Part shown: positions 54,201-64,000 of the stretch, in pieces
How positions within the stretch are numbered: the first letter of the stretch is position 1
Layout of the letters: each line of letters starts with the position of its first letter
Assembly: GCA_020891255.1 (NCBI GenBank)
Contig: BQFW01000007.1
Coordinates: 558,001-622,000 of the forward strand
Direction: 5' to 3'
DNA: 64,000 nucleotides
Origin: Entomortierella parvispora E1425
Lineage: Eukaryota; Fungi; Mortierellomycota
Made by a program: the position numbers and the translations under genes
The notes under the pieces: generated by a model
Told to the model about the DNA's origin: nothing
Seen by the model: the letters and a program-made list of their open reading frames with translations, nothing else
The model's database searches: none

Positions 54201-56470
54201 CCAGAAGTTGTAGTCAAGCTTTTCAACCTATCTCGATTCTGCGAGACACCACACGAAGAAGCCCTGAGACTTGCAAGAGAACTTCCATTGGCATGGATGC
54301 AATCCTTTTGGACTTGCTCTCTTATCACTGTAATGCTCGCCAGCTGCAATCCAAGGTAGGTAGTGGAGTGACATCAAGTGGCAATGGTATTGTCGAAGGG
54401 GTGTTGATGTCTAATAATCTTCTTTCTTTTTTGAATTACTTGTAGGATTCTGGCGCTCGTAGTTTGGGACTCAATGCCAGTCATCCGAACCCTCTTGGAA
54501 CTTTGCATATCACAGCAATACTCTTTTCCTCCTCCCAACTATACCTCTCGTTCTGATCCTTCAGCAGAACGTCTTTTGCGCAACAGCATTTTGGCAGACC
54601 AAGCCGATCGCGATTGTGTGCTCGAGTGGGAGAAGAAGGCAATGATAATTGAGGGACGTTGGAACGAGTCCACGCAGGGTCCGGTCTCACTCTCTCCAAA
54701 TGAGAGTGAATTCGCTGGATGGTTGATGCGGCTTGACTATGGACTCACTCAGCCACCAAGAGCTCCGCCTGCGGAAGTCATGCAGCAGCTCCGCGGTATG
54801 AACGAGAGGTTTGGCTTGGGAATGAAGCTCGCCGCGTCCAGAGATCCCGATTATTTAGGACGAATGGTGGGCACCAATGACGATGCAGCCTGGATTGATC
54901 GCCTTCTTCGAGATGTTCCCGAAATTTTGAATGCCTTGCCAGCATCAACGCTCTGTGCCAGATACTGTCGATCAATTGCTACATTGGAAGCAAACAACAA
55001 CAAGAACTCGGAAGCGACTGGTGCTGTGAGCGACGTGGCAGCAGACTTCAACGTGCGCAGGAAACTCGGAGGCTACCTGGATAGTGTCATGGATACAAGT
55101 GGAGCCAATGCCTACGCGCTCTCCACTATAGACCCCAGATACCATTTCCAAGAAGTGAGAGATATTTTTGAGTTCTTTTTGGCTCGGCTATGCCCACCCA
55201 CCATTGACTCGGAAACTGATCCCAAGACGTCGGCTGCCATTGCTCTGGAAACCAAGGCAGCAATGGATGCCCTCTTTCAAGGTCACCTCAAATGGCCGCA
55301 AGTTCTTCTCCAGACTGTTCTCAAGACCCCCCAAACAGGATTTCTTCTCAAGGCTTTGGACTGGATTGAGGCAATCCTCTCCGCGGAGAATGATCCCAAA
55401 TGGATTCACGCTTCTCTTGAGTTCTTGCTCAAAGTAGAGTGTCATGGAGGCGACGGCGAACAGGCCCTGGAGCCCAGTCTTTTGGCAGTAGCACGACTTT
55501 TACTTCAAAGAACATTTGTCTTTGATTGGCTCATTCGCGAGCGGGTTGGTTCAGAGGCTGGGGCAGTGGTACGGGCACTCAACAAACGACTCGAGATGTA
55601 TTTTGTCCGTCAAGATACTGCCATGGAAGATGTCAATCACGACTCCTTATCAAGGCACCATTCATCGAATGAGAGACCTAGAGTGCATGTGCGATTGCTC
55701 AACGGCGCGAACTTTCCGACCTTCTCAGAGATTCTTTGGCTATCACTTATGGTGATATCGGTCGGCGAGGTCAACAAGCAAGGTCAGAGCTCCACCTCGC
55801 CAAGCTTTGCTGATGGATCATACGACAAGAGTTCTAACAGCAATTGTTATTTATCTATAGATGGAACGATATGGAGTATCCTACTGAGTGATACGGATTC
55901 CCGTTCTGCCACGCCTAAAAGACTTGTGGACGAGACTCCTCTGCTAATGAGTCAACCGCCTCTCTTAAATGACCTTTCCCTTCGAATCCGACTTGTTCAA
56001 TCAACGCAAGAGTCTGATGTTGTAAGGATAGCGCTGGACGGACTCTCAGTAGTGCAAGTTCTGGAGGTTACCAAGCAAGGTTTCGGTCTCCAACTTCACA
56101 TCGCACAACTGGTACACGAGGCGGTTGCTGTATCTCTGGAAAGAGATAGTGAATCAAACGTGCCAACATACCTGGAACCAGCAACAACACGACGTAAGTC
56201 TCAGCATTTTTTTTTTTTTTTTCACTTCTGCGTTATAAAGAATACGGTATACCAACGTTACTTTTTGACTCGCTGTATTCTTTAGAAATCACGGCCCTGC
56301 TTCAATACTACGCTGACCAAGGTGGCCAGTCTAGCTTGAAGGCTTTAGGCGTTTTGAAGAGTAGACTTGGTGATGCAAGGACGGCCAAGATGCTTCATTC
56401 CAGTCAAGGAGCCAACGGAAAGGATAGCAAGCAAGCCGCCCTGCCTGATTTTTTCGCGATGGAATGTTGA
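51220..56470 (+). CDS. INTS1: Integrator complex subunit 1-like protein, multi-exon, including a 15-nt microexon (51391-51405)
   Basis: WPTDFVMAYLEDALGERSWCAHADTTHFVGNVLTAF matches the INTS1 block WPEIFVKVYIEDSLGERIWVDSPHCKTFVDNIQTAF (recalled). Also LLELCISQQYSFPP, LAASRDPDYL and LNALPASTLC in INTS1 order. Exons join in frame at GT-AG sites; the last exon ends ...FFAMEC* at 56470. Confidence 0.8.
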
Positions 56471-56533
56471 AAGTTGTGTGTATGTTTAGAACGACTTTTT
56501 TTTTCCTAGAGGTGCAAGGTCGTTGTAGAATAG

Positions 56534-56596
56534 CTAGTTCACCCGTTTATCTCTTTGTCCGTAGCCAGACGAGATAAAAATAACTATAACTTCAAA
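56534..56596 (-). ncRNA. Candidate Fanzor omegaRNA scaffold or element 3' end: strong hairpin at 56578-56546 followed by CTAG
   Basis: Minus strand UUUAUCUC-GUCUG-GCUA-CGGAC-AAA-GAGAUAAA (13-bp stem with a 3-nt bulge) begins 18 nt after the Fanzor stop codon. Function is inferred from position only. Confidence 0.4.
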
Positions 56597-59500
56597 TTAT
56601 AGAGGTTGGAGGGAAGAAGGTGGGGGTCGCGCGAGCTGGCGCGGTCGGTCTTGCTGCTGGACATACCGCTCTCCGATTATCGCAATGTTGTGCGCTCCCA
56701 CGCAGTCTCTGTGGATCCATCGACCACACTGCGTGCATGCACACGTCCTCATAGAGGGTTTTGCAAGGCGTGTCGCGACGTTCTTTCCTATGCACGTGGG
56801 ACACATTGTCGATGAGAGGTATTCATCGCCAATGACGGCCTTGTATCCCATTGTTTGTATCTATCATAAGCGAGGGAAAAGATATAATCAATCTGCATGC
56901 CCACAAGAGAGAGAGCGCGGACACTACCAAGATCGTGTGTGTTTTTACCTTTCCGAAAAGACGCCTCAGGAAAGTGGTGTGCACGGACGTCAGGTTGATG
57001 CCTGTTTTAAATTTGCCATTCCCGAGCACAAATATAACCCTCCTTGCTTCAACAGGAACTCCCTCGCATGCCAATTCCACCAACTTTAAAACACCGTTGA
57101 CCGCAAGGTCCATTTCTGCGAGTTTGGATTTCTTGTGGTCGTGAGCCGCTTTCTTCCAGGTTGCTGATGAATAAAACCCGTGTATCAAAGGTTCAAGTTG
57201 GAAGTACTGCCGGTGTCTGTTTTCAATGGCTGTAATGTCGTGGTAGTTGAGCGGATGTAGGGCGTTTTGCAGGTCGTGCAGCGACGGCAACAAAGTTGGG
57301 TTGTCTTGGTCCTGACCCTGCTGAGTACAAGCCCACAAGGAAGGGCCTACGCTGTCGTTTGATCCTGCTGTTGGTTGGGCCCGTTTGCAATGCTCCGCCC
57401 ATTCTCGGAATGCAAGCGTCGGCTGATAAAGCGATGACCTTTTCACCGTCAGGTTGACAACCCTTTCTCCCGGCAAGCTCACACAAAAGGCGCCACTGAC
57501 CACCTCTCCTGGATCTATTCCGATAACAACAACTGATTCAAGATCTTGACCGAATTCAGCAACCAAACTGTCCTTGTCGGGATACAAGGTCTCGATCCTC
57601 CTCATGAACTCTTTGTATCTTGTCGATTTCCGTGGCTTGAAAAGATCATACCCAAGGATTTGCAGCTCATGCCCATCTGTTCGGATTATGTTGTTCAGGG
57701 CATATCGGTATTGTCCGGAAACCTGGGGCGGCATGGGAAGTCGAGGTGGTTCAGGATCCATTGTCGATGGTGCCGAGGAGGAGGGCAATGGTTGCTGGGC
57801 TGTGAGGGAGTTGTTGTGCAGTCTCCGGTAGTGATTAATACGTCTCTTGTTGTATTGCTCTAGCACCAGTTGGCCGTATACGTCCGGCAAGGTGTTGCTC
57901 CGCTCGTCCATTGAGGTTATTTTCTTCCCGTACGGTGTCTGTCTTTTCTTGGCTGCCTTGATGGTGGACCGGTCTCCGACAAACAACTGTTTAATGACAT
58001 TTCCGTAGGAGTTTTTCCGGAGATGATTGGCACGTTGCCGATTGCAGACGGAGGTCATCAAGATGTCGCCCACTCGTCCGGCTGTTACGCCCCATAGTAA
58101 TGCCACCAGAGCCTCTTCATTCAGGTCAATGAAAGAGTCTGTCATCCCTGCCTGGACACAAAACTTTGGCTGTTTTACGGCTGTCGGTATCTGCAGCAAA
58201 TGACGCCAGCAAAGTCTCAAGTGACCCTTCTTAAACGTCATCTTTTGCGATGCTTTCCTTGGGTCGTCGTCTGAGTCTTCGTCATCTGCAGACAGTTCGG
58301 CTTCGTTGATGGCGTTGTTGATGGCAGCATCTGATGTCTTCTCGTCATCCACTACCCCCATAAGCTCGGTGCAGTCTAAAGATAACTTTGTCAACTGCAG
58401 CACGCAAAGGTATTCTTCGATTAGAATCAATTTTTTTAGAATGCAGTGATCCAATTTCAAAAACCACTTCGTTCAGTACCTTGTTGCAGAGAGTGGTCGG
58501 CAATTTGCGATAATGCTGCTTGATTGCTAGACAGATTTTTGGTGTCAGTTCGGCAATGACATTGCTCAGGGGGAGGTTGGACGGGTTTAATGCCTCGAAC
58601 TCCGGGTGGAACGCCTTAAATTCGTCAAAGGTACTTTGTGCTTCCGCCACGGCATCCTTGGACTGGTCCTTAACAGGACGGCGTCCACTTTTCATGTCAG
58701 AGGAGCCTCGCAAGACAAACGATAATAGATTCTGCACGAATCTTTCTAGCCAGTCTGACTTTGAGTCCAGGACATTTTCCAGAAACTCGTCCCCAGTGCT
58801 GTCGATCAAGTGCCGCAAAATCCTCATCTCCATCATCTTCAATACGTAATGCTTGGCACTGTTGGTGACGGAGACAGCTTCATCCAGACGCTGGACTACC
58901 AGTGTGCTCTCTTCTTTGGAGAGATCTGTGGCACGCAGGAGACATCCTCGCAGAGAACCCATGGTCAGAGTAACGGTTGCAAAAGCAGATTTGAAGGATT
59001 TTTTAAGAGCCTTGGGACCCGCTGTCGGTGATGTGGGAATAGGAAGCTCCTTCTTGCGTGTCTTTTTCACTGGGGAAATTGTTGGCCGATCGGACTTTGT
59101 AGTTGGTTTACGCGGTTTTGGTTTTTTGGGCGTCGAAGGCGTCAAGTGTGCAAGCTCAACATCGTCTATGGGACTTGCAGTCTCCAGCGCAACTGTTTGG
59201 GGAAGATATCGGTGGTTCAGGTCGGTCCGGGATCGAAATCTAAAGAGGTACATGAACGATATGTGAGAACGTTGGAGTTGATGCAACTTTGTCTTTTAGT
59301 TCCCAGAAGGGTACGAACCTTGATTTCTCCCACTTCTTCTTTCTTCTTTCCTGCTTCCTCTTGGCCTTCTTCCTTTGTCGCTTCTGCTCCCTTTTCTGTG
59401 CACGGCTTGGGTCAGGGACAGGCTGGACGGAGGTCGAAGAGTCTGCCGCATCTGTGGAGGGTGCTATGTGGTCCGATTCGGCTATTGGTGCTGGTGGTGC

Positions 59501-61041
59501 CAATGGCGGCTCCGTGTGTGGTGGTTTTGCAGGGCCTAGGGCAAAGCGGTCCCAACTGCGCTTCGCTTTCTTGAGTTCCACTTTGTTGACTATGGACAGA
59601 AGTCGCCGGTGAATGTCCAGCGTTGGAATGTTTCCAGCTGCATTTAGAGCTGTCTCCTCACAATGAACAAATGCCTTCACTGCATTGTCATAGCTGTTGG
59701 CTAACACGCTCAGCTGCTTGTTGGCAGTGGCTATTCGTCGAAGATCCTTCTGGTGGGCCTTTACTGAGGAAGGGTCGGCGATCCTCCTCAGACGTTTCTC
59801 GCAACTCGCGATGGCTGCAGCCTTTGACTCTTCCGCAGTCTGATGTATGGCACGGACATACTCTTCGATTTGCTGGTAAATCCATTTTGCCTGGTCATCT
59901 TTGCTGGCAACGTTAGAGCTCCCCGTCACAAGCTGTCTAACCTTGGCCATGTTCGATGCCAGTTGGTAGAGTGGCATGCCTGCGGTATAGTCATTGGTCG
60001 TCAAGACAGAAACGAGTACGAGATGCGCCGGAGTTTGGAGCTCGAGTTCCTCCAAAAGTGCCTGCTTACTGAAAGTGGTCCAAGTCAAGGGCCGACCAAC
60101 GGGCATTGTGATTGTGGTCACCGACTCGTATGCCATAACGTCTGAATCTTTGGTAATGATCCTGACATTATCTGGTGAATGGGCATTCGTCACGCGGTTT
60201 GCAATGCATGTGTCACTCTGGTGGGTACACTGGCATATTTTCCATCCGCTTTCATGAAGTTGTGTGATGACATCCCTGATTGCGCTCGCGGGAACTCGGT
60301 ACGAAGTCTTCACCCTCTTGTATAGTTGGGTAGTATTCCTGATCCTGCCCCCGTCATAGTCTTTCTCTAGCTTGCCGACTCGCGTCTCCAAGGTTTGGTC
60401 GCGCTTTCTGTGAGCAAGTTCCTTCTCCAGGGACCGGGAACCGTCGAAATGAAGTGTTGTATGATCCTTGCTCAAGTAGGACACAAGGATTCGATCGATT
60501 GTCTTCCCCAAGGATCGATAATCCTAAGAAGCAGCGCGATTGAGACGGTAAGTATTCCAATCGAAAAGGCATGACTCTTGTTGTAATGATCAGACTCTCT
60601 CTAAATGTAGAGTAGATATACAGATATACGTACAACGCTCCTTTCCTCAGCATCGTTTGCTTCCAGTGACCCGTCTTGATTGAAACGAATTTGGGATGGT
60701 CGTTCTGCCAGCATATCCTGCATCGCTGCTACAATGCCATAAGGGGTGCTTTGGCTTGAAGGATCCACCCGGGCGCGTTTTCGATGCAGACTGGCCTCAT
60801 CTGTTCCTGGTCGCTTCGGAATGGTTGTTGACGGTGGTGTAGACGCGCTCGTTGGGACATCGGGCGAAGCTACCTGTCGCCGAGCATTTTTGGCTGCGAA
60901 CGCCACATCCAGGTGGAAACCATGACTGTGAATTATTCCGAAAAACATGGAGGCGCAGTCCACATGACAGGTGAATCCTCGAAGGTCCTCCTCAACTCCA
61001 TCGGTCGATTTGATCCTAGCTGCAAGGCCCTGGATTCCCAT
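56597..61041 (-). CDS. 1360-aa fusion of a FEN1/XPG-like PIN-H3TH nuclease with Fanzor (TnpB-like RuvC RNA-guided nuclease). Exons 61041-60634, 60523-59319, 59239-58480, 58394-56949, 56860-56597
   Basis: Four GT-AG introns (110, 79, 85, 88 nt) join the ORFs in frame; 4083 nt total = 1361 codons. PIN motifs: MGIQGL, HVD, HFDG, QSD, KDSD, NDY. Fanzor motifs: NNIIRTDG, VIGIDPG (RuvC-I D, 57515-57513), IFVLGNG, GDEYLSS (E, 56824-56822), CPTC..CTQC zinc finger, HRDCVGAHNI (RuvC-III D, 56707-56705). Confidence 0.9.
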
Positions 61042-61208
61042 GGTAATCTATGGCATTGTTGTGTTTAAAAAAAAGTTAGTATCATTACTTTTTGCTTGTC
61101 TAGCTCTGGCGGGGTCCAGATGGTAGCGAAATGCAACGAAAAGCATACAGGCTTTGTCCACGAAAGGGTGAATGACGGTGCAGTAAACAAGGAGAATGAA
61201 GACTAATG

Positions 61209-61234
<26 letters not shown>
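61209..61234. repeat. (GT)13 microsatellite upstream of the PIN-Fanzor start
   Basis: Read directly from the sequence. Confidence 0.93.
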
Positions 61235-61239
<5 letters not shown>

Positions 61240-61446
61240 TGGGTTGGAGGAGCTGGAGCTGTTGATGATTTGAAAGGAGGATCCAAAGAATGGAAAGTGA
61301 AGGCGGACGAATGACCAAAGTGCTGCTTTTCCCATAGTCTATCCTCTTTTTATCAGTTCCTTGCGCGTGGTTCAACTGATGGAACCCAGCGGCCCGTCCT
61401 CTGAAAACACAACCCATAACACATCCAGCTCAGTAGGAAACACACT

Positions 61447-61648
61447 TGTCGCTATCTCCTTTCATGCTCTATGAAATGTTTTGGTACTCACAAGAAGTAA
61501 TTGGGACTAAGAGAAGGATCTGAACTGACCCCTCTGTCTCGATCCTATAAGGACGAGCCAGAGTGGCTTAGCACGGCTCCTGTCATCTTGCTTTATTGTG
61601 CTATCTGACATGCCCGCTTGACCCAAATATACCACAGCCCTCTTCCTT
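61447..61648 (-). mobile_element. Candidate polypurine tract (61648-61637) and ~190-bp 3' LTR (61636-61447) of the Gypsy element
   Basis: Minus strand AAGGAAGAGGGC is followed by TGTGGTA...AATAAA...TAGCGACA (TGT...ACA termini). The 5' LTR lies outside the window, so this cannot be confirmed by pairing. Confidence 0.5.
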
Positions 61649-61936
61649 GGGGAAGGCTGAAAGCCGGGTAAGAATAGTATCATTTGTGTCGTACAAGCAT
61701 GCTTGATGATCCCAAGTAAGAAAAAGAAATCAAAAAAAGAAACATATAAAAAAAATAAAAAATAAAAAAATAAGTGAAATGGAAGTCAACATCTTCCAAT
61801 GACCTTGGTGGAGACTACCGGGCAAAAATCAAAAAAGCCTGGCTGAAGGGAAAACCTCGTGGGTGAAAACCTTCATCGTTCTCCTGAGGGAAAAGCGGAA
61901 AACAACCCTCCATAATTCATTTAGCGATGTGAGTGG

Positions 61937-64000
61937 TTAAGTGCGCTTGCGTTTTTTCGCATGAGCTGCTTTCTCCTTTCTAGCCCGCTCAGCGCCTTCG
62001 CCAGTTTGGTCTGCCGACTGGGTTTGACCTGACCGCGTACGCGTCCTTGTCGCGATCGTTGTGTTCTCACTGGAATCATTGCCCTCTTGGTTCCGACCAG
62101 TTGGGTCTTCCTCTGATTCTGATTCGCTGTCTGTGAAGTCCGTCTCTTGAACTGCCTGCCCAGACTTAGTCCTCTTCGTCAGATGGTTTAACTGCTGCGA
62201 CGAGTGCACCCCTGGTCGATCGCGAGTCTTCCAGTAGTCCTCGATGCATTTCGTCTCAAAGAAATTCCTTATCGGTTCCCAGGTATTGTCCTTTGCCGTG
62301 TATCCTTTCCACTTCACCAGGTACTCTACTCCCCCCCCAGGTGGCTCCCTGTGGTTGAGTACTTTTTCTACCTCGTAAGTGGGTGTAGCTTCAAAATCCT
62401 CCAAGACGAGTTTGAGCTGTGATGGTGCAAAATTACGCTTGAGTTCCTCACCTGTACCGTCACGCAGTACATATGAGCCCCCTGTTGTTTTGCGAACGAC
62501 CGTAAATGGTCCCTCGTAACGCGGCGCAAGTTTGTCTCCTCGGATTGGGTCAATTGACATCACCTTAGCTCCGTCAGCAAATTCATTGAGCAGGATCGAT
62601 TTGTTGAATCGTTCGACCATTCGTCGTTGGGTCTCCTTAGCCTTAGCTGCAATTCCTGGAAAGACAACATCGGTCACGTATTGTAGTCTCTCCAAGAGTT
62701 CTTCCTTCGTGGCGGCTCCCACATTGGCACGCGGAAAGTTGCTGTTCCCGTCGTATTGTCTGGCAAAGAAGAGTGAAAATGGAGATGAGTTGTGTAACGC
62801 GACGATCCTCGTGTTCATGGCCAACTGTGCCATAGGTACATGCTGTGCCCAACTGGCTTTGTCTCCTTTGATCTCCTTCCTAATTATGTTGCAAGCCGTC
62901 TTGACGTGGTTCTCTGCCACTCCATTTCCCCGTGGGTGATATGGTGTGACAAGACGGTGCTCTGCTCCTGCTTTCTTCAGTAGCGTGGTTACTGCCTCGT
63001 TGACAAACTCTCTGCCATTATCCGATTGGATGATCCTGGGGAATCCGATCGTAGTGAAGATACCAAGAAGTACTTCCGCGATCGTGAGTGCTGCTTTGTC
63101 TGGTATGGGTCGTAAGAATACAAACCGCGTGCATACGTCGACCAGCACAAGGAGGTATCGGCATCCATTGCTTTCCTCCGGAAATGGTCCAGCCAGGTCG
63201 ACTGCCATGTGTTCACCAGGTAGATTCGAATATATGGCCGCCAATGGGTGATAGCCTTTGCGAGCGATGTTGGTTCGCTGGCATTCGCGACAACGTTTGA
63301 CGTGTTCCAGACAATCCTTGACAAGATGTGGCCAAGTTTTGCCTATCGCATGAATATGTTTAACCATTGCATTGGCACCGAAGTGGCCATTTGCATGTAC
63401 ATCATCTAACAGCGTCGTTCTGTCCGATTCCTCGACGGTTTCCCTAATTGTGTCCTTGTCCTGGATCAGATGTACGTAACCATACACTTTGTCTGGTGCG
63501 GTTCCTTTGATCTTATCCGTCCATAAGTCCTTTGGAAATTGCCGAGATAACGCGTCTGGCAGAACGTTCAGCGCTCCTGGTCGGTACACCACCTTGAAGT
63601 TGTAATCCAAGATTGTCTCCTGCCACGCTGTCAACATGGAGTTCATCTCTTGCTGGGTATGCATGAATGTCAGAGCTCTATGGTCCGTGTAGAGCGTGAA
63701 GTGTCTACCCCATAGGTAATAGTGCAATTTCTTTAGTGCAAAGACAATCGCCAGCAACTCCCGCTGTGTAGCTGAATAATTGCGTTCACTTGGTTGCAAT
63801 GAACGTGCGACAAATGACACATACCGAATATTCTCCGGGTTTTGCTCCCCATCAGGTAATTGATACAATACTGCTCCTATGCCGAAGTTCGATGCATCTG
63901 TGGCAACATGGAACGGTAGGCTAAAATCAGCAAAGTGTAGGATGGGAGCAGCGATGAGCAGATTCTTTAGGGCGTTGAAACATTCAAGCTGTCTCTTATC
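61937..64000 (-). mobile_element. pol: Ty3/Gypsy chromovirus pol, 3' part: RNase H, integrase and chromodomain; frame open to the window edge
   Basis: RNase [14 protein letters not shown] and [21 protein letters not shown]. Integrase HHCC (HANGH..CREC) and DDE (DLAGP, SDNGREF, NGVAEN), GPF. Chromodomain [23 protein letters not shown]. No stops seen. Confidence 0.96.

Follow-up and report, generated by a model that had tools for sequence, protein, structure and literature searches.

We analysed a stretch of 64,000 nucleotides (nt) of the mortierellomycete fungus Entomortierella parvispora E1425 (assembly GCA_020891255.1, contig BQFW01000007.1, positions 558,001 to 622,000 of the forward strand; hereafter the window, with positions counted from its first letter). 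Its minus strand carries a single five-exon gene that encodes an XPG/FEN domain, a basic linker and a complete Fanzor1 module (Table 1). An earlier note, made from the letters of this DNA, had joined five open reading frame (ORF) fragments through four phase-matched GT-AG introns into one frame of 1360 amino acids (aa), and this structure was reproduced when we assembled the gene from the minus-strand ORF pieces within 56400-61300 at the GT..AG sites that the note implied. The spliced product has 4083 nt, i.e. 1360 codons followed by TAA, with no internal stop, and the junction peptides read ERSV/DYRS, KS(R)/FRS (where the intron splits a codon), CNK/LTK and FGK/IQT, the slash marking the position of the intron.

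A protein search with exon 4 against 1.84 billion representative proteins gave 170 matches, and a second search recovered EMPS_04109 (P0157), a 1363-aa hypothetical protein of E. parvispora that is 98.5% identical to our spliced product over its full length. This public model derives from another copy in the same genome, 98.8% identical to the one in the window, and has all four junctions in the same places as the window gene; the 17 substitutions and the single 3-aa indel that distinguish the two proteins leave the junctions untouched, so that the introns are shared with an independent public gene model. The public model at the window locus itself, EMPS_04955 (P0164, 1153 aa), is 100% identical across exons 1-2 and stops early, leaving out RuvC-II/III and the zinc ribbon (window 56597-57351) even though the frame stays open, probably through an annotation error. 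The GT-AG sites and intron lengths are the same in four of four near-identical copies, three of which have an intact frame, and the intron positions are kept at five loci in three genera (the window, L005, L006, L008 and L009), with an intron 2 of 79-107 nt in every one. Between the intact copies, the ratio of nonsynonymous to synonymous substitution rates (dN/dS) is 0.23-0.38; for aa 351-790, where the linker and the first part of the Fanzor module lie, it comes to about 0.25.

Table 1. Coordinates of the fusion gene, its parts and the mobile unit that carries it (window positions; pLDDT, predicted local distance difference test; TIR, terminal inverted repeat)
Feature	Position	Strand	Remarks
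Repeated mobile unit, part in window	56548..61474	-	4927 bp; right end 56548 intact; left 570 bp including left TIR missing or displaced
XPG/Rad2/FEN1-family nuclease domain	59912..61041	-	aa 1 to ~340; intron 1 inside
Linker	59026..59911	-	~aa 341-609 (~270 aa); intron 2 inside; helical, then basic low-complexity
Complete Fanzor1-type module	56600..59025	-	~aa 610-1360
Exon 1	60634..61041	-	aa 1-136; MGIQGL start, first catalytic Asp D28, then low-confidence insertion (pLDDT <50, aa 59-99)
Intron 1	60524..60633	-	110 nt, GT..AG, phase 0; same site in P0157 and other copies; position kept in L005, L006, L008 and L009
Exon 2	59319..60523	-	aa 137-537 + 2 nt; remaining XPG/FEN domain (D163, K170, R177, Q238, D240, D262, D264, D314)
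Intron 2	59240..59318	-	79 nt, GT..AG, codon-splitting; in the linker separating the two nuclease modules
Exon 3	58480..59239	-	aa 538-791; end of linker and start of Fanzor1 module
Intron 3	58395..58479	-	85 nt, GT..AG
Exon 4	56949..58394	-	aa 792-1273; Fanzor REC/WED, RuvC-I (GIDPG, D1085), GNG at canonical RuvC-II position
Intron 4	56861..56948	-	88 nt, GT..AG; intronless P0146 aligns uninterrupted across the junction
Exon 5	56597..56860	-	aa 1274-1360 + TAA; relocated Glu E1286, C4 zinc ribbon (TNB), RuvC-III (R1324, D1325)
3' untranslated tail to right end	56548..56602	-	two hairpins; identical in 4 copies

The N-terminal part of the protein starts with MGIQGL (residues 1-6) and continues with the motifs HVD (D28), FDG (D163), QSD (D240), DSD (D262/D264) and NDY (D314). 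Single-sequence phmmer searches of exons 2 and 4 against the PDB gave no matches, and profiles were needed; language-model features of exon 2 led to the Pox_G5 and XPG_I/XPG_N clusters. We therefore built a profile from an alignment of ten N-termini of the family, in which G2, D28, D163, G164, K170, R177, N313 and D314 are invariant and D240 nearly so, at overall identities of 22-44%. Searched against the PDB, this profile matched EXO1 (3.4e-10), Pyrococcus furiosus FEN-1 (1.6e-7), XPG (3.9e-7), human FEN1 (1e-6) and Rad2 (1.1e-5), and the first 31 matches all belong to the XPG/Rad2/FEN1 family, with the motifs aligned to one another (hvDG/vFDG, qaD/EAD, dSDl/DSDL and NDY/CDY). An AlphaFold model of the domain (pLDDT 77.5) contains an insertion of about 85 aa after the first helix, mostly of low confidence and disordered-looking at aa 59-99, and the top 50 PDB matches of this model in Foldseek are all EXO1, FEN1, XPG, GEN1, Rad2 or T5 FEN, with a probability of 1.00 each. 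Protein searches started from the P0146 N-terminus and from the N-terminal profile (A1) recovered only the same family or its fragments.

Six of the seven active-site carboxylates are present (D28, D163, D240, D262, D264 and D314). In FEN1 we take the carboxylates to be D34, D86, E158, E160, D179, D181 and D233, and the gateway Lys/Arg pair to be K93 and R100; K170 and R177 lie 7 and 14 residues after D163, the same spacing as in D86/K93/R100. By profile and predicted fold, the N-terminal ~340 aa are thus assigned as an XPG/Rad2/FEN1-family structure-specific 5' nuclease domain, closest to EXO1. Because its Pfam XPG scores (see below) are sub-threshold, we class it as a divergent superfamily member and not as an orthologue of any named enzyme. 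The rest of exon 2 covers the beginning of the linker with a K/R-rich stretch; the K/R runs of the linker resemble nuclear localization signals, as judged by eye alone.

In the C-terminal part we find IRTDG (1028-1032), IGIDPG (D1085), VLGNG (1247-1251), DEYLSS (E1286), a zinc finger (C1293/C1296/C1315/C1318) and HRD (D1325). The TNB domain is the sole Pfam domain found on single exons: PF07282 (Cas12f1-like TNB) matches exon 5 at 1.2e-7 and 32.2 bits, compared with a curated cut-off of 26.3, and P0157 at 31.3 bits. In an alignment of 11 members, D1085, E1286, R1324-D1325, C1315/C1318 and the motif Ser are invariant and C1293/C1296 nearly so. The canonical RuvC-II site is occupied by GNG (1249-1251), with the compensating E1286 just ahead of the zinc finger. 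The corresponding profile found exclusively TnpB/Fanzor/Cas12 chains in the PDB (ApmFz2 at 2.6e-8, LaTranC, GtFz1 at 9.7e-6, TnpB, Cas12f and SpuFz1) and aligns vdEYltS with VNEYLTT of ApmFz2, the Glu of which was mutated as E467A (Jiang et al.). The Fanzor1 motif of Bao and Jurka, D-X(125,275)-[TS][TS]-X-X-[C4 zinc finger]-X(5,50)-RD (PMC3627910), is recognizable as D1085, followed after 203 residues by S1289-S1290-T-M-C1293..C1296..C1315..C1318, five residues and R1324-D1325. The AlphaFold model of residues 610-1363 (754 aa) has a pLDDT of 86.2 and a predicted template-modelling (TM) score of 0.84, and its top seven Foldseek matches are all Fanzor1 structures (PpFz1, GtFz1 and SpuFz1, 6.7e-13 to 2.1e-10, TM score by target up to 0.61); Cas12j comes next at 3e-5, then TnpB at 4.6e-4 and ApmFz2 at 5.8e-3. 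Sequence profile and model agree in identifying the C-terminal ~750 aa as a complete Fanzor1 module (REC/WED, RuvC and TNB) and not a mere RuvC remnant.

These results bear out what the earlier note had read from motifs. All the motifs it quoted are present at the expected places, and the structure check that it put forward, an AlphaFold model searched with Foldseek, matched both halves to the expected folds. Its Fanzor/TnpB half is backed by a profile confined to TnpB, Fanzor and Cas12, a fold whose top seven matches are Fanzor1 and a TNB score above the cut-off, and its FEN1/XPG half by profile and fold matches confined to that family and superfamily; the Glu that it described as relocated to DEYLSS proved to be invariant E1286, aligned with the Glu of ApmFz2 that was mutated as E467A. 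Beyond the note are the setting of the gene as cargo of a TIR transposon, the piggyBac-type association and a Gln at one of the seven FEN catalytic acids, each taken up below.

The fusion, for which the earlier note had looked to relatives, is conserved: N- and C-terminal matches are co-linear in P0001, P0005, P0010, P0022, P0060, P0154-P0157 and P0162, the proteins with this arrangement come from at least ten Mortierellaceae species, and the metagenomic protein P0146 (1256 aa) is encoded by one continuous ORF with FEN motifs in its N-terminal part and a TNB match in its C-terminal part. Because many independently predicted proteins are co-linear and one environmental lineage has both parts in an unspliced single ORF, the comparison indicates that the fusion is not a one-off gene-model accident. 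In public records the fusion proteins go under the names 'hypothetical', 'PIN domain-like' and 'Cas12f1-like TNB domain-containing'. No relatives were found in viral contigs scanned with P0146.

Some members of the family have features of their own. P0146 lies on a 5461-bp contig of JGI metagenome 3300037462 (L002), and both it and P0125 are intronless XPG-Fanzor fusions with 43% GC; their loci lack the TATCCC TIR motif described below and have a GC-rich hairpin and a T-run after the stop. In Linnemannia hyalina, the public 'piggyBac-derived' proteins P0158, P0159, P0175, P0183 and P0184 consist of a transposase remnant merged with the XPG-Fanzor gene. A piggyBac-XPG-Fanzor triple fusion (P0158 and similar) was accordingly discarded as an artefact of merged models, the true MGI exon being inside a 1351-nt 'intron' of the model.

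Comparison of its copies places the gene as cargo of a multi-copy TIR DNA transposon associated with a piggyBac-type transposase. The unit in the window is 98.3-99.1% identical to L001, L003 and L004 of the same genome, the flanks being unrelated, and with it the genome holds at least four near-identical copies of this family (family 1), about 5.5 kb at full length and without a transposase. All four end on the same base, 49 nt past the stop codon. Full-length copies begin with TTATCCCTTAGTCTGTAAAATATGGCAAATTTGCCCG, which forms an imperfect TIR with the right end, as was found by comparing copies; the TIR of the element is TATCCCTTAGTCYGTA. A repeat search for TIRs around the window gene gave none because the window copy is without its left end, and a search for the left TIR by the reverse complement of the family-1 right end did not find it. 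A second family in the same genome, with 42% protein identity, has the same TIR motif, as do elements of L. hyalina, L. gamsii and Dissophora ornata, which brings the TIRs to three genera; complete copies and relatives have them at both ends, on which ground a Helitron-like terminus was rejected. The element ends read T/TATCCC...GGGATA/N (the slashes marking the borders), compared with the TTAA duplication and TIRs starting with CCC by which piggyBac elements are recognized, and the terminal TA may be a target-site duplication.

At L009 of D. ornata (MU616581.1, 1854-10622), a TIR-bounded element of 8.8 kb encodes, on the upstream side of the fusion gene, a near-complete DDE_Tnp_1_7 transposase of piggyBac type (6.4e-51, profile positions 1-249 and 296-349). 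A larger relative in L. hyalina (L007, 5785-12566) has the same TIRs and a remnant of DDE_Tnp_1_7. Neither the window nor any of the four family-1 copies of E. parvispora contains this transposase. The family-1 copies share an exact 3' end and differ in their 5' extents, which reach 9419 in L001, 213 in L003 and 4683 in L004 versus 61474 in the window. L001 is without a left TIR altogether, yet lies in unrelated flanks, and L003 has two insertions. Similar 'fuzzy 5' ends' were described for the MCi-2 Fanzor elements of Mucor (Bao and Jurka).

Between the stop codon and the right end, the non-coding tail forms two hairpins. In the first, which includes the stop codon, 56602-56597 pairs with 56589-56584; in the second, 56576-56571 pairs with 56553-56548, so that this terminal hairpin is closed by the final six bases of the element; the left end has none like it. 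Across five families the distance from the stop to the right end is 48-73 nt, the tail is conserved more than the upstream synonymous sites, and both hairpins are paired in 60 of 60 cells, with one compensatory double change each, in the family of the window. The 313-nt 3' region folds better than shuffled sequences (z = -2.8), and an Rfam scan of 54-64 kb gave nothing relevant. The tail is a candidate for the 3' part of an omegaRNA scaffold, or else for a right-end recognition site; its structure is consistent with a scaffold terminating at the right end, without proving one.

It has been proposed that Fanzor and TnpB aid the persistence of transposons by cutting sites that have lost the element, the repair of which restores it. 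Our best overall explanation, to which we assign a probability of about 0.7, is that the locus holds a fusion gene carried as transposon cargo, the product of which would make a guided cut and process the resulting ends in cis. Transcription of the omegaRNA would run from the 3' end of the gene across the right end, as in TnpB/Fanzor, and the guide would be taken from the DNA flanking the right end. RuvC would then cleave sites that lack the element, either the excised donor site or an empty allele, and the tethered EXO1/FEN-type nuclease would process the break by 5'-to-3' resection or by removal of a 5' flap or displaced strand, thus steering repair from end joining to homology-directed copying of the element. 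The two-nuclease, RNA-guided action is one that we infer by analogy with TnpB and Fanzor. More tentatively, the protein might be a natural 'cut-and-resect' RNA-guided homing nuclease, in which the Fanzor1 part makes the break and the tethered EXO1/FEN part resects or de-flaps it; in the radical form of this idea the 3' part of the element would spread without the DDE transposase, which would explain copies that have the exact right end but no left TIR.

Several observations weigh against our best explanation. In Pfam searches of the window exons and P0157, XPG_N (PF00752) and XPG_I (PF00867) gave no match, and the best XPG scores in the family are 16.8-17.9 bits (P0125 and P0146) compared with a cut-off of 24.9. 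The position of the first metal-ligand Glu (E150 of EXO1, E158 of FEN1) is occupied by Gln (Q238) in every Mortierellaceae member, as a result of which the N-terminal domain could be weakened or inactive, and between recent copies dN/dS is about 0.85 over aa 1-350, a value based on small counts. We infer splicing, a single mRNA and the omegaRNA from the DNA; a search of a soil metatranscriptome (X1) returned one 449-nt contig of a relative, which lies within exon 4 and covers no junction. The covariation of the hairpins comes from one lineage, and 19 of 500 shuffles were equally good. As to the element, the left end of the window copy is lost or displaced, and a target-site duplication could not be recognized, with no TTAA and no direct repeat in six complete copies and no empty site seen.

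The Gln bears most directly on the possibility, which we regard as unlikely, that the fusion is real and its XPG/FEN domain catalytically dead, serving as a module that binds DNA structures (flaps, nicks or R-loop junctions) or docks PCNA or repair factors. The high dN/dS of aa 1-350 and the divergence of the domain from the Pfam XPG models point the same way. However, the six other acidic ligands, G2 and the equivalents of K93 and R100 show little or no variation, as expected of an active site that is being maintained; Gln is still able to ligate metal, and the metagenome members P0146 and P0125 retain the Glu at the position equivalent to Q238 (GEAD). The stretch with the high dN/dS also contains the disordered insertion of about 85 aa.

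XPG and GEN1-type nucleases cut bubble and junction structures, and both are among the sequence and fold matches of the N-terminal domain. The earlier note proposed that the FEN domain could cut the R-loop junction or the displaced strand. This variant, in which the domain would work inside the R-loop and its cut in the non-target strand or at the junction would add to one of the two RuvC cuts or take its place, would draw on the kinship with XPG and GEN1 and on the flexible 270-aa linker, which would let the domain reach the R-loop. We also consider this improbable: by sequence and fold the domain matches EXO1 and FEN1 best, and these act on 5' ends, nicks and flaps, and with the RuvC triad of the Fanzor module fully intact and characterised Fanzor1 enzymes cutting DNA without a second nuclease domain (PMC10432273), the second nuclease would not be needed for the break itself.

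It is very unlikely, in our estimate, that the XPG/FEN nuclease belongs to the transposition machinery, processing hairpin or flap intermediates at the right end so that the 3' part spreads without a DDE transposase. To our knowledge, no FEN-family nuclease acts as a transposase. The shared 3' end and differing 5' extents of the family-1 copies, the placing of L001, the 'fuzzy 5' ends' in Mucor, the lack of a visible target-site duplication and a terminal hairpin confined to the right end would all suit such a role, but the 5' differences are just as well accounted for by later insertions or deletions (the window copy adjoins a Ty3/gypsy element, and L003 has its two insertions), and the TIRs of complete relatives are symmetric and accompanied by a piggyBac-type transposase. 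Least probable of all is a gene-model artefact that joins adjacent, separately expressed XPG-like (exons 1-2) and Fanzor (exons 3-5) genes: the exon-2 frame, read on, does meet a stop where intron 2 ends, an in-frame Met (M631) of exon 3 lies close to where the Fanzor module begins, the gene models of this family have proved unreliable (the truncated model at the window locus and the L. hyalina merges) and the single spliced mRNA is deduced, but the spacer of 79-107 nt, with its conserved position and GT..AG ends in every lineage, is too short for a terminator and a promoter, the low dN/dS of aa 351-790 includes the linker on either side of the intron, P0146 holds both domains in one frame, and some 12 independent predictions across genera are co-linear.

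The reading of a guided cut with end processing in cis sets the protein apart from the systems that it resembles. With Fanzor1 (SpuFz1, GtFz1 and PpFz1; PDB 8GKH, 9CER and 9CF0) it shares the fold of the whole module, the Bao-Jurka motif, the relocated Glu, TNB, a place on a eukaryotic transposon and an ORF end near the right end of the element. However, most Fanzor1 proteins have 600-700 aa (PMC11423790), whereas the fusion protein has ~610 extra N-terminal residues that include a second nuclease domain. The transposon superfamilies in which Bao and Jurka found Fanzor are Mariner, Sola, IS4-like, Helitron and MuDr (PMC3627910), a list that does not contain the piggyBac-type (DDE_Tnp_1_7) association seen here. 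The likeness to EXO1, FEN1, XPG and GEN1 lies in the MGIxGL start, the six of seven carboxylates, the equally spaced K93/R100 equivalents and the NDY (GxDY-type) motif; unlike these enzymes, the fusion protein has Gln for the first Glu, the ~85-aa insertion and sub-threshold Pfam XPG scores, is tied to a predicted RNA-guided nuclease in place of tails that interact with PCNA or the mismatch repair machinery, and is encoded by a transposon gene and not by a housekeeping repair gene. TnpB of IS200/IS605 has the same RuvC and zinc-ribbon core, an ORF abutting the right end and a structured 3' tail where omegaRNA scaffolds end, whereas the fusion gene is eukaryotic, with introns, TIRs, an extra 5' nuclease and, in relatives, a DDE transposase instead of a Y1 or serine TnpA. 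In laboratory Cas9/Cas12-exonuclease fusions, an RNA-guided cutter is tethered to a nuclease that processes 5' ends; these are engineered, whereas the Fanzor fusion is natural, transposon-borne and kept across a fungal family, its activity being a prediction.

The statement in the earlier note that no characterised Fanzor with such a domain was known agrees with our literature searches, which found no paper on this fusion. The only text found to pair Fanzor and flap endonuclease for a natural gene is one speculative sentence (PMC11071296), which mentions 'Fanzor flap endonuclease homologs (Fendons)' on contigs of giant viruses in animal datasets; it gives no architecture, sequence analysis or fungal link, and may or may not refer to a true fusion. 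Papers that bring Fanzor together with FEN1 or flap endonuclease are otherwise reviews on engineering or tools, none was found that brings it together with XPG, and the founding and structural Fanzor papers make no mention of an XPG/FEN domain. Since Pfam is blind to the XPG domain, surveys based on domains would miss the architecture, and this probably explains the 'hypothetical' naming in public records.

If our reading is right, this would be the first natural RNA-guided nuclease of the TnpB superfamily found fused to a Rad2-family nuclease. Eukaryotic end joining would defeat a strategy of cutting and restoring, and a built-in nuclease that processes 5' ends would be a direct answer to it: the transposon would be copied back through homologous recombination even in a cell inclined to end joining. 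The protein would also be a natural counterpart of the engineered Cas-exonuclease fusions, of possible use in genome editing, for which many diverged homologues exist, and intronless members such as P0146 could be handy for expression.

On the far side of the right end, 262 nt away, lies a convergent ORF of 603 aa (54474-56285, plus strand) with no Pfam match. Directly upstream of the fusion gene, 61475-64000 is occupied by a Ty3/gypsy pol of chromovirus type (pol ORF 61940-63868, minus strand) with RT RNase H, integrase zinc-binding, rve and chromodomain matches. The homology of the mobile unit stops at 61474, beside a '...TCA' end, and a long terminal repeat (LTR) retrotransposon has probably inserted into the 5' region of the Fanzor element.

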